Below are positions 45,429 to 58,092 of a stretch of DNA of 64,000 nucleotides, one piece after another. Source of the stretch: Hydrolagus colliei (lineage: Eukaryota); the NCBI GenBank assembly GCA_035084275.1, contig CM068771.1:4092001-4156000 (forward strand). Reading direction: 5' to 3'. Positions within the stretch are counted from its first letter, which is position 1. Each line of letters starts with the position of its first letter. The notes beneath the pieces are model-generated. The model did no database searches, was not told the DNA's origin, and saw only the letters and a program-made list of their open reading frames with translations. The position numbers and the translations under genes are program-made.

Positions 45429-45495
45429 ATGGACGGAGGTAGACTGAGAATCCGCTCGTTGCTGTCCTCGCTTCTCATCCTCGCTTCACTACGTG
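45429..45495 (+). CDS. Ig receptor signal-peptide exon
   Basis: MDGGRLRIRSLLSSLLILASLR G|gtgagt, phase 1. Confidence 0.8.
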
Positions 45496-48400
45496 GTGAG
45501 TTTGTGTCGAGCCATCCAGAACTAGTTGTATTCTCGAGCTGGGGTGAGGGGGTGGGCGGGCAACGACCTTAAAAGTTAACACAAAACCGTTTGATTGATC
45601 TCTGCTGAATACCCCCTTGTTGAGCTCTTGCGAGACTCGTGGGCTTGCGGGGAGACTCAGGGGTTAGAGCGCTCGCTCCACAAGCGAGAGAGCTTGGGGG
45701 GGTTTGATTCCCGGCAGATTGGGCAAGTCTCCTTACATCACACGCTTCTGTTTACCTACGATAATAATAATCCTTGCATTTGATATCGCGCTTTTCACAT
45801 CTTATCGTCGTCTCAAAGAATGTACCGTAAACTGAAGTGACTGTATATATTTGTGGGCGAAACGCGGCAGCCAATTGCGCACAGCAGCGTCCCCCACAAA
45901 CCGCCGTGGATTGAAAATTTTTTTTCTTGTGGTTTTCTTTGGGACGGATTATTAATAGGCACGCACGCATGTGTGTGTGTGTGTGGAGTAAGGAAACTTG
46001 CCCAAGGTTTCGCCCTGACCTGCCTGGATTCGAACACAGGTCTCACGCGCTCGTAGGGCGAGTGGCTCTAACCACTGAGCCACAGGAGCTCCTGGCAGCG
46101 AGGAGGAATCTGGGGTTGTTTATCGATTGGGGGTAGTAATACCTTCAAAAACGTTTACTGGTTAAAACCAAAATAATTTTGTCTCCAAATCCACGACTGC
46201 TTGTGGGACACTGCCGCGAATCGCCCACAAAACGCACATGTCTCGGAAGACACGATAAGGCGCCAAGAGTGTGACGTTGCGATCAGTGGCATTCTTATTA
46301 TTCCAACGTTTCCGTGTGATTTTTGACAGCCCGGGTCATCGCTCTGAAAGTCACAGCCGCCGCGAGTCCAGTGACCGGGTTTGTGAAGCACGACGTCCTG
46401 CTGCCCGTGTTCTACGAGGCGCCAAAGACCTCGGGATTCCTGCGGATATTGTGGGAATGTGACTTGGGACACGGGATGCGGAGAGTGTTGATGCACAGCT
46501 CGCCCAATACCACCCAGACCAAAGGCTGGATATTGCCACTGTTTGCCCCTGACCCATACAAAGGCCGAGTGACCCTTTCTGCTGAAAACGCTTCCTTGCT
46601 TATCAGGGATCTGCGGCTGAACGACACCGGGATATATCGGGTCACGGTGACGGATTCTAAAACAAACTCGCAGGCGTACGTCAACCTCACTGTCGTCCTC
46701 CAACCGGGTAAGGACTGGGAGCGCGTGTCGCAGTAGGAATAACGATGATGAAATAAGGATAAGACGAATAATACTCTTTGAATTTTATATAATGTCTCAT
46801 CACGCCTTCGAGACGTCTCAAAGCGTTTCAAGCGACTATTAATATATAACTAATTATATTGTTAATATAATTCATATATTAATAATCCTTGCATTTGATA
46901 TAGCGCTTTTCACATCAACAGCGATAAAAATTCCACCCGCAAAGCACACAGTCACCACACTTGTGTGAGAAATATACTGAGAAGTGTAGTGACTGTGTAC
47001 TTTGCGGGGTTGAAATGGGGTGAAACAGGGCAGCTAATTGTGCACAGCCGTGTCCCACACTCAGTGGGATTTACATTTACATTTATAGAGAGAGCCCCTT
47101 TCACGTCGGTGGTGGGGGGATGTCCCAAGGCACTGAACAGTCAGGACGGGACCAAAGCCAAGACACGATAAGTCCCATCTTATCGACGTCTCAAAGCGCT
47201 TCACAGAGTATACTGTAAAGTGGAGTGACTGTATATTTGTGGGCGAAACGCAGCAGCCAACTAAGCACAGCAGTGTCCCCCACAAACAGTCGTGAATTGA
47301 AATGAACAATTTATTCTAGTTTTTTTTTCTTTGGAGGGATTATTATTAGGCGTGTGTGTGTGGAGTCAGGTAACTTGCCCAAGGTTTTGCTCTGTCGGGA
47401 ATAATGACATCATTATTTTTTGGTGGGGACAGGTTTGTAGGGAAGAGAGAAGGGGAGTGGGATGATTTGAATGAGCTCTTTTCAAAGACCCAGCACGGAC
47501 GCGATGGGCCGAATGGCCTCCTTCTGTGCTGTATATTTCTATGAATCGAACCCAGGTCTCCCACTTGTGAGGCAAGAACCCAGGTCTCCTGCTCTCCTTC
47601 CCCCCTACCCCGACCCCTCCCCTTACCCTCTTTCCCCCCTTTCTCTGCTAATCCCACTTCCACGGCTATTTGTGAGACGCTGCTGTGCGCAGTTTGACTG
47701 CTGCGTTTCACCCACAAATATACAGTCAACTCTCCTACTCTCCTGCATCCTGCCCCCACCCCTCCCCACCACTGCCCCGCTCTTGTCCCTACCTGACTGT
47801 ACAGCGTCTTGGGACGTCCTCTCGATGTGAAAGGCGCTATATAAATGTAAGTTTTGATTGATTGATTGATTGATTGAATTAATTAATTAATTAATGAATT
47901 AATTGGAAGGTGACTGAAGGCGTGGTCAAAGAGAAGGTTTGGAGACAGGTCTTGAACGAGGCAAAGAGAATGTGGGATGGAGTTCCAAAGGGTGGGGGCC
48001 CGACAGCCGATGGTGGGGCAAGCCAGACGGGGGATATGGAGCAGGTGAGAGCCCGTTTAGTGGGGGGGATGCGGACAGGTCAATATGGTGTGAACAGCTC
48101 AGAGTTAGGGAGGAGTGAGGCCGTGGAGGATGTTGAAGGCGAGGATGAGGAATTTGAACTCGATCCTCTGAGGAACGGAGTGGAGCCTGGCGACGGTGGG
48201 GGCGATGGGGGTGGTGGTGGAGGAGAGGGCGCGAGCTGCAGAGTTCTGGATGATCGTCGGCTTGTGGGGAGCCGACGATCAGGGAGTTGGCGGAGTCGAG
48301 CCTGGATGTTAAGGGCAGCGTAACAAGAGCTGTAAACCTCCCTGTGTTTTTCTCACAGTAACAGGTGCTCCCACAACAAACAGTGTGGAGGTGAGGTCGT

Positions 48401-57400: not shown

Positions 57401-58092
57401 TTGCTGCTAGGCATATAGAGGCCCCATCCTACTTAACCAATCTACTCTCCCCCTACACGCCCACCCGGACCCTCCGTTCAACAGGACTTGTCCTGCTCCA
57501 AGCCCCCCGCCCGAACCGCCCCACCATCGGAGGCCGGGCCTTCAGTTTCTCCGCTCCCACCCTATGGAATGCCATCCCTCAATCCCTCCATTTCGTCTCT
57601 TCCCTTTCCTCTTTCAAGGCCGGTTTGAAGACTTTCCTCTTCGATCGTGCCTTTTGTTCCACCCCGAACTCTTTTACCTCCCCTTCGTGTTTCACCCCTT
57701 CCCAAACACTCCCCTCCCAGCTCGGGTCACACGCCTCCTGTTCAGCGCCTTGGGACGTCCTCCCGACGTGAAAGGCGCTCTATAAATGTAAATATAAAAT
57801 TGTTGTTGTTGTTGAGTGAGGAAACTTGCCTCACTTTTCGCCCTGTGTGTGTACAGTCAGCGTATGACTGCCCCTGACTGTTTCTCTCTCTCGTGTCTTC
57901 TCCCCACAGCTGCCTCACTCCCTGCGCAGCCTCGACGAAGTCACATACGCAGAGATCAACTGGACCCCGATGAGGAGACCCAACCCACAGCCCAGGGCTC
58001 TGTGTGCACACACTGACTACATACACACTGAGTACAGCAGCATCCGAACTGACACACTGACACACACACACACTGACACACACACACACTGA
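45429..58092 (+). CDS. Single IgV-domain type I membrane receptor (CEACAM-N/CD2/HEPACAM-like) with ITIM and ITSM, about 278 aa; join(45429-45495,46330-46707,48359-48499,50746-50813,57910-58092)
   Basis: Leader, V domain, TM and two cytoplasmic exons, all with canonical splice sites and compatible phases (1,1,1,0). Joining the last exon across 7 kb is inferred, and extra small exons are possible. Confidence 0.75.
46330..46707 (+). CDS. Ig receptor V-set domain exon lacking the canonical B-F disulfide
   Basis: ttttgacag|..VTGFVKHDVLLPV..LWEC..YKGRVTLSAENASLLIRDLRLNDTGIYRVTV..VNLTV..|gtaagg; 378 nt, phase 1-1. Confidence 0.9.
48359..48499 (+). CDS. Ig receptor stalk + transmembrane exon
   Basis: tctcacag|..HIVGLVTAGIALLCLSIIGLFLICLRRRIK G|gtgagt; uncharged TM followed by RRR. 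Confidence 0.88.
49850..50420 (+). mobile_element. L2 LINE 3' fragment
   Basis: [14 protein letters not shown].., L2 terminal hairpin, (GTT)n. Confidence 0.85.
50746..50813 (+). CDS. Ig receptor cytoplasmic exon
   Basis: ccccattag|..CSKSDGNWTPEETELHKRSLTR|gtaagt, phase 1-0. Confidence 0.75.
54130..54760 (-). mobile_element. CR1 LINE 3' portion
   Basis: [63 protein letters not shown]. Confidence 0.92.
57420..57810 (+). mobile_element. Young L2 3' end, near-identical to 1750-2120
   Basis: Shared 3' UTR text and terminal hairpin. Confidence 0.85.
57910..58092 (+). CDS. Ig receptor terminal exon with ITIM (VTYAEI) and ITSM (TEYSSI)
   Basis: Strong acceptor tcttctccccacag|[63 protein letters not shown]. 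Confidence 0.75.
   Translation: MPHSLRSLDEVTYAEINWTPMRRPNPQPRALCAHTDYIHTEYSSIRTDTLTHTHTDTHTH

Follow-up and report, generated by a model that had tools for sequence, protein, structure and literature searches.

A conserved chimaera gene beside RNF5 for a cysteine-less, single-V-domain receptor with an inhibitory-type tail

The DNA analyzed here is a 64,000-nucleotide stretch of the Hydrolagus colliei genome (assembly GCA_035084275.1, contig CM068771.1, positions 4,092,001 to 4,156,000 of the forward strand), referred to below as the window. Within it is a genuine and intact gene of five exons that encodes a small cell-surface receptor. The product is probably an inhibitory receptor of a HEPACAM/CEACAM-like family: a type I single-pass glycoprotein with one disulfide-less V domain and a cytoplasmic tail carrying two immunoreceptor tyrosine-based motifs, one of the inhibitory (ITIM) and one of the switch (ITSM) type. 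A prediction of the gene, without a name, already exists for the elephant shark Callorhinchus milii, and the broad family is undescribed in print.

The gene is of interest mainly for its position beside RNF5; it is not a new kind of molecule and reveals no new molecular principle. It adds a conserved, constrained, inhibitory-type receptor of the immunoglobulin (Ig) superfamily (IgSF) to the RNF5/butyrophilin neighborhood of chimaeras, and its analysis brings to light an entire family of V receptors that resemble HEPACAM, lack the disulfide, have ITIM/ITSM tails, and are filed under inconsistent automatic names. For comparative immunology, it provides the oldest lineage of jawed vertebrates with a candidate receptor of checkpoint-like type, and it can serve as a test case for whether or not the proto-major histocompatibility complex (proto-MHC) included adhesion-type V receptors without the Cys pair.

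Gene structure and encoded protein

Splicing of the five exons between 45429 and 58092 (Table 1) yields an open reading frame (ORF) of 278 codons. GT donors and AG acceptors are present at all five exons, and the exon start phases are mutually compatible. The initial annotation had read leader, V domain, uncharged transmembrane (TM) segment, and a tail with VTYAEI and TEYSSI from five phase-compatible exons, and the spliced ORF of 278 amino acids (aa) bears this out. A single Ig exon lies between the leader and TM exons. It is the sole V exon of its family in the window, and no further Ig exon belonging to the gene is present there.

The V-set domain is matched by Pfam PF07686 over residues 35 to 145 (E = 2e-8; 34.9 bits, against a curated cutoff of 26). 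The core Trp and the D.G.Y motif of a V-type beta sandwich are in place. AlphaFold (AF2) models the domain with a predicted local distance difference test (pLDDT) score of >90, and the TM helix (helix 164-198) is also confident. Foldseek gave TM-scores of ~0.8 to the V domains of CAR (D1) and Nav beta4; its matches in the PDB were generic V-set domains only (CAR, Nav beta, MPZL1, and B7-H6) and did not discriminate between families. Cys is absent from both the B strand (LLPVFY) and the F strand (IYRVTV), with Val at both positions, and the canonical intrachain disulfide is lacking. V-set domains without these Cys residues are already known, in CEACAM N, CD2, and HEPACAM; the missing B-F disulfide therefore does not exclude V-set membership. 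The only extracellular Cys is Cys66, in LWEC, and the domain has four N-glycosylation sequons (N82, N109, N120, and N141). The lack of B- and F-strand Cys, the lone Cys of LWEC, and the four sequons had been described in the initial annotation and were recovered in the spliced protein. The further proposal of a disulfide-linked dimer fared less well: the Cys of LWEC is not conserved in C. milii, which has IQWKF at this site and its single extracellular Cys in the A strand, so that comparison lends the dimer no support. From V-domain geometry, the residue two after the core Trp would be expected to point inward.

The TM segment spans 24 residues, none of them charged, and so gives no sign of pairing with adaptors bearing immunoreceptor tyrosine-based activation motifs. 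In the tail of ~80 residues, VTYAEI (Y231) and TEYSSI (Y260) stand 29 residues apart. The sequence thus combines [SIVL]xYxx[IVL] and TxYxx[VI] motifs with an uncharged TM segment and a spacing suited to tandem Src homology 2 (SH2) domains, as in ITIM/ITSM receptors. The length of exon 4 is not a multiple of three; its skipping therefore puts exon 5 out of frame, giving a product of 230 aa that has lost both the ITIM and the ITSM.

Kinship of the TM segment and juxtamembrane tail (residues 174 to 229, encoded within 48440-57945) with LST1 was considered and dismissed as chance, the Pfam match (E = 0.012) being below the cutoff and not reproduced in C. milii or other relatives. The SLxRLP sequence at the exon 4/5 junction resembles SLQRLP in LST1, another ITIM adaptor of the MHC class III region.

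Ortholog in C. milii and selection

A word-indexed search returned a single clear match, C. milii LOC103190391 (XP_007909341.1, “uncharacterized protein,” 277 aa), with 65% identity at 98% coverage. It is the 1:1 ortholog, sharing the five exons, their phases, and the RNF5 neighbor. Exact exon mapping gave C. milii exons of 76, 378, 141, 86, and 153 nucleotides (nt), with phases as in the window gene. The V exons are of equal length and 68% identical; in the tail, VTYAEI is identical, and TEYTSI takes the place of TEYSSI. The C. milii protein differs in one sequon and in having exon 4 begin with 7 additional residues. Its exon 4 is likewise frame-shifting, and isoforms predicted by NCBI include one with exon 4 skipped (P0005) and one with intron 4 retained (P0003). 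Another member of the C. milii cluster, P0004, has a translated 5′ leader, which suggests that it originated from a transcript.

Between the two chimaera genes, dS is 0.50 and dN/dS is 0.40 overall (Nei-Gojobori method). By region, dN/dS is 0.36 in the V exon, 0.32 in exon 5, which carries the motifs, and ~1.2 (1.18) in the linker exon 4. The low values in the V exon and exon 5 are the pattern of a functional gene under purifying selection, with both the V domain and the signaling tail constrained.

No paper mentioning LOC103190391 or the homologous loci was found in the literature. The gene indeed lacks a descriptive name, as first noted; the C. milii ortholog is “uncharacterized,” and the relatives are named only automatically. 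It is not lineage specific, as had been considered: besides its prediction in C. milii, its family occurs in jawed vertebrates up to platypus.

Intron 1 of the C. milii gene contains an inverted V-exon fragment (ETKGWIYPGLAPEADTGRVTLSPENAS) at 12695-12793, minus strand, of the C. milii locus sequence (L001); its identity to the V exon of the gene itself is ~60 to 67%. No counterpart of this fragment was scored in the window.

A widespread family of Cys-less V receptors

Judged from profile searches, the gene is an uncharacterized member of a widespread, unnamed HEPACAM-like/CEACAM-like family of Cys-less V receptors that occurs in most lineages of jawed vertebrates. An exhaustive hidden Markov model search of 1.84 billion representative proteins matched 235 proteins at an E value of ≤1e-3 and 48 at ≤1e-10. 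Word-indexed searches found just 1 and 6 proteins; the family emerged only in the exhaustive search. Members in chondrichthyans include those of the sharks Heptranchias, Mustelus, and Hemiscyllium and the rays Hemitrygon and Hypanus; others are from gar, sturgeon, coelacanth, lungfish, salamanders, frogs, turtle, ducks, chicken, and platypus. Their names are all automatic and contradict one another (CEACAM3/4/5-like, HEPACAM-like, HEPACAM family member 2-like, CD276-like, and uncharacterized).

Among 117 near-full-length V domains, both canonical Cys residues are absent in 112 and the core Trp is kept in 116. Two-tyrosine ITIM/ITSM tails are found in many members, including those of duck and chicken and further unnamed matches, and the platypus protein has one ITSM. 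A Heptranchias protein (P0010) aligns over its full length, with an ITIM-like YxE motif (VIYVEM..W) and the ITSM (TEYTSV) conserved in the tail. In the family tree, the pair formed by the window gene and its C. milii ortholog was supported at 99/99, and a grouping of both chimaera genes with the Heptranchias gene was not rejected (approximately unbiased test, p-AU = 0.35). Deeper nodes were unresolved, and the V domain of human HEPACAM sits inside the resulting polytomy (tree without HEPACAM2).

Human reference sequences for HEPACAM, CEACAM1 N, and PD-1 were validated, by exact look-up for HEPACAM (NP_689935.2) and by 100% PDB matches for CEACAM1 N and the PD-1 ectodomain. The family profile aligned with the human HEPACAM V domain over 119 columns (hhalign probability, 98.2%; E = 3.7e-14) and scored 63 bits with hmmsearch across the whole domain. 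For CEACAM1 N, the alignment covered 85 columns (96.4%; E = 1.1e-9), and the hmmsearch score of 31 bits came from the D to F strands only. CD2 d1, an unvalidated sequence, gave 18 bits, the lowest of the three references scored with hmmsearch. By profile comparison, the V domain thus appears to have HEPACAM as its nearest relative among named proteins, ahead of CEACAM. The initial annotation had listed CEACAM N, CD2/SLAM, and HEPACAM/VSTM5 as types with Cys-less V domains; of these, the family profile scores best against HEPACAM and next against CEACAM N, the latter over part of the domain only.

HEPACAM (GlialCAM), together with proteins annotated as “HEPACAM family member 2-like,” shares with the family the Cys-less V core pattern GTVGxSxLLxVxY ... 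W ... Y+xR+xLF(P)ENxSLLLxDLQLxDxGxYxV. Pairwise identity between HEPACAM and the window protein is confined to the D to G strands (45% over 51 residues). Unlike the window protein, HEPACAM has a second Ig domain (C2), and no ITIM/ITSM pair was seen in its tail, which is long and rich in Pro and Ser. The human HEPACAM gene is located at 11q24.

In Xenopus tropicalis, at least five family V exons lie within 28 kb at 10.53 to 10.56 Mb of CM004450.2, in two or three annotated genes (“CEACAM3-like”). This cluster is distinct from the CEACAM locus that has been published for Xenopus, which is on chromosome 7.

Proposed function and alternative readings

The analysis establishes gene structure, fold, motifs, conservation, purifying selection, and membership in the family. 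Inhibitory-receptor function is likely, and the most likely mode of action, by analogy with receptors of similar build, would be contact-dependent inhibition through SHP-1/SHP-2, possibly with switching by SAP-type adaptors at the ITSM. The GFCC′ sheet of the V domain would bind a cell-surface ligand; on the model of HEPACAM, CEACAM1, and CD2/SLAM, this ligand could be either the receptor itself or a different member of the IgSF. Src-family kinases would phosphorylate Y231 and Y260, and the paired phosphotyrosines would recruit the tandem-SH2 phosphatases SHP-1/SHP-2, with the ITSM possibly recruiting SAP-type adaptors, dampening activation of the receptor-bearing cell. Skipping of the frame-shifting exon 4 may generate a short-tailed, signaling-dead isoform, as in CEACAM1-L/S.

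Several points weigh against this interpretation. We infer the ligand, the cell type, and the use of isoforms, and binding of SHP and SAP proteins is predicted solely from motif consensus. The ITIM-like VIYVEM of the Heptranchias relative ends in Met, outside the strict consensus. Because the family tree lacks resolution at its deep nodes, the term “HEPACAM-like” reflects profile scores and no supported clade. Finally, the ITSM lies in a minisatellite-like array beside assembly gaps, which leaves some residual chance of local misassembly.

It is unlikely that the gene is the chondrichthyan CEACAM1 ortholog and a true member of the CEACAM family. CEACAM N domains were the top single-domain matches of the single protein in the PDB sequence search, sharing NASLLIxxxxxNDTGxY, with scores near those of CAR, Nav beta4, and CD48. 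CEACAM1-L likewise combines a Cys-less N-terminal V domain with an uncharged TM segment and an ITIM and ITSM-like motif roughly 27 to 29 residues apart. The small cytoplasmic exon 7 of CEACAM1 is frame-shifting, and its skipping yields the short tail, a parallel to exon 4 of the window gene; in addition, the NCBI names of two relatives, “CEACAM4-like” in Heptranchias and “CEACAM5-like” in a duck, point the same way. Nevertheless, the window gene is without the IgC2 domains of CEACAM1-L, having no IgC-like exons, and the family profile spans the complete V domain of HEPACAM but fits CEACAM1 N over the D to F strands only. A CEACAM-like nature was demonstrated for a single match, P0138, which has 54% identity to human CEACAM1 N and stands far down the list (E = 8.6e-6). 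What defines a CEACAM locus, in mammals as in reptiles, frogs, and fish, is its synteny with LIPE, CNFN, PAFAH1B3, and BCL3 (PMC3628338, PMC5112662, PMC13278318), whereas the window gene is flanked by RNF5 and a butyrophilin (BTN)-like gene. A receptor of the SLAM/CD2 type, in which the ITSM would act as a SAP/EAT-2 switch with activating or inhibitory outcome and the gene would correspond, in the MHC paralogon, to the SLAM cluster at 1q23, is equally improbable. The Cys-less V domain and the TxYxxI motif fit such a receptor, as do weak Pfam Receptor_2B4 matches in relatives (P0008, E = 0.001; P0010, E = 0.089), the presence of CD48 among the PDB profile matches (32 bits), and a small DSPc phosphatase gene adjoining the gar homolog. 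The protein, however, has no C2 domain and pairs a single ITSM with a classical ITIM, the CD48 score is no better than that of CAR or Nav beta4, and CD2 d1 was the reference with the lowest score.

A PD-1-like member of the CD28 family, standing beside the gene for its B7/butyrophilin-type ligand, is suggested by architecture but is very unlikely. PD-1 (PDCD1) also has one IgV domain, a stalk, a TM segment, and an ITIM followed by a TEYxxI ITSM (VDYGEL and TEYATI), PDCD1 has a five-exon layout, and a B7-family (BTN-like) gene does lie 4 kb downstream of the window gene. PD-1-like genes have been reported in Chondrichthyes (PMC11599192). Against this, PD-1 has the canonical V disulfide, the family has no B- or F-strand Cys, and the hhalign probability between the family profile and human PD-1 was 32% over 60 columns, with no specific sequence relationship detectable; membership in the PD-1/CD28 group was rejected on these grounds. 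That the locus is a decaying or misassembled pseudogene, or a chance concatenation of ORFs, is also highly improbable. It is rich in repeats, with one gap inside the gene, two just 3′ of the stop codon, and the last motif in a tandem repeat, but the 278-codon ORF is intact over five exons with consensus splice sites, is collinear with its ortholog, and shows the dN/dS of 0.40 at a dS of 0.50 given above.

AGER (RAGE) orthology was also rejected, in agreement with the initial annotation: the window gene is on the RNF5 strand and encodes one Cys-less V domain, whereas AGER lies on the strand opposite to RNF5 and RAGE has disulfide-bonded V-C1-C2 domains. RAGE chains were absent among the 60 PDB profile matches listed, which included CEACAM, CAR, and CD48. 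On present comparisons, we classify the gene as apparently not an ortholog of CEACAM, PD-1, or AGER, and retain the reading of an inhibitory-type receptor in the HEPACAM/CEACAM-like family.

Genomic neighborhood and the question of MHC linkage

The placement of the gene between RNF5 and a butyrophilin gene, proposed at the outset, is borne out by RNF5 exons upstream and by V and C exons of a BTN-like gene that begins ~4 kb past the stop codon and continues beyond the window edge (Table 1).

Table 1. Features of the receptor gene and its neighbors (positions in the window; L001, C. milii locus sequence)
Feature	Position	Strand	Length (nt)	Start phase	Description
RNF5	Exons at 26878, 37087, 38403, 41189	+			Upstream of the receptor gene, same strand; best match C. 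milii RNF5, 90% identity
Exon 1	45429-45495	+	67	0	Start codon (ATG at 45429) and signal peptide (MDGGRLRIRSLLSSLLILASLRA); phase-1 end, GTGAGT donor; aligned to C. milii LOC103190391 exon 1 (L001 12432-12507); conserved block 45249-45675 versus L001 12252-12665
Exon 2	46330-46707	+	378	1	V-set Ig domain; phase 1-1; Trp64, Cys66, four sequons
Exon 3	48359-48499	+	141	1	Stalk, uncharged TM helix (IVGLVTAGIALLCLSIIGLFLICL), RRRIK stop-transfer motif
Exon 4	50746-50813	+	68	1	Cytoplasmic linker
Intron 4	50814-57909	+			Holds assembly gap 55002-55186 and conserved noncoding block 52782-53421
Exon 5, coding part	57910-58092	+	183	0	ITIM VTYAEI (Y231), ITSM TEYSSI (Y260), stop codon TGA 58090-58092
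Tandem array	58035-58482	+			(CA)n-rich; units repeat the TEY..SI-coding segment; gap 58132-58270 inside, gap 58483-58635 at end
Butyrophilin/B7-type gene	62136-62870	+			V exon 62136-62390 (MEVRWFRVRFDSPVHLF...DHGEYTCFV; MEVRWFR...); C exon within 62484-62870 (...CESSGWFPAPEVLWFDDQGN...)

On a 4.1-Mb scaffold of C. milii, LOC103190391 directly follows a RING-finger gene whose exons are identical or nearly identical to those of RNF5 in the window; a search of the 10 kb downstream of this ortholog yielded no BTN-like exon. RNF5 is followed by an NDK/Dpy-30 gene in sawfish and has an SNF2-helicase gene on its downstream side in horn shark. The gar homolog is on another contig than gar RNF5, and in X. 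tropicalis the family cluster (10.5 Mb) and RNF5/AGPAT1 (73.5 Mb) are on the same chromosome, 63 Mb apart. The adjacency of RNF5 and AGPAT1 was verified in X. tropicalis only, and a motif scan for AGPAT1 upstream of RNF5 (window positions 1 to 26800) found none. Among genes bearing on MHC linkage, the window shows RNF5 and the BTN-like gene only. Heptranchias RNF5 was not among the 120 matches to the window RNF5 listed, and the neighborhoods of the Heptranchias (H. perlo, gene at CM068675.1, 1.04 to 1.08 Mb) and Mustelus homologs were viewed in 10-kb flanks, which are too short for synteny. A look for the position of chicken LOC771657 gave no location.

Among the lineages compared, the adjacency of RNF5 and the V gene is found in chimaeras only (the window and C. 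milii). Given the other RNF5 neighbors in sawfish and horn shark and the separation in gar and Xenopus, the ancestral MHC linkage entertained in the initial annotation is a possibility rather than a result. A more far-reaching scenario, which we regard as doubtful, is that the chimaera gene is the surviving MHC-resident copy (6p21-type paralogon) of an ancient Cys-less V receptor, with HEPACAM (11q24), CEACAM (19q13), and CD2/SLAM (1p13/1q23) as its paralogs. An adhesion-type V receptor with ITIM and ITSM would then already have stood beside B7/butyrophilin-type genes in the proto-MHC, and the chimaera gene may pair functionally with the adjacent BTN-like gene.

Within 26878-29600, which covers RNF5 exon 1 and intron 1, exon 1 is directly followed by ~2.5 kb of simple sequence rich in C and A; it contains three assembly gaps and reads as long pseudo-ORFs in several frames. 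The short RNF5 segment expected to encode CWPCLHQ was not located.

Assembly gaps, repeats, and noncoding conservation

Missing letters in assembly gaps were never inferred. The flanks of the gap in intron 4 are collinear with C. milii intron 4, with order and orientation kept (54025-54105 corresponds to L001 18985-19067, and 55208-55418 corresponds to L001 19351-19548). The C. milii ortholog has no exon between exons 4 and 5, and the protein alignment is unbroken there (SLTR|LPHS in both species). Taken together, these observations indicate that the gap leaves the reading frame unaffected.

In the (CA)n-rich array at the 3′ end of the gene, the first unit alone is translated, providing the TEYSSI codons, and is contiguous with unique sequence; later units lie 3′ of the stop codon and are separated by (CA)n..TGA. 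Two segments of the array were reported by Tandem Repeats Finder (58048-58118 and 58293-58390). C. milii has an equivalent array after its stop codon (L001 22150-22350), and this shared arrangement argues that the translated first unit and the stop codon are genuine. In both chimaera species, changes in the frame or copy number of the array could in principle gain or lose ITSMs.

The ~640-bp conserved block in intron 4 is 77% identical over 616 aligned bases to a segment of C. milii intron 4 (L001 17464-18111). Its conservation matches that of the exons, yet it contains frame-breaking indels and has no ORF in common with C. milii, which rules out a coding role; possible explanations are a regulatory element of the intron and a noncoding RNA.

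tRNA-derived repeats resembling short interspersed nuclear elements recur in the introns of the gene (e.g., 46000-46090, 49060-49150, and 56480-56580). ORFs resembling reverse transcriptases of the long interspersed nuclear element type are present at window positions 554-1822 (+ strand) and 59350-60000 (− strand).

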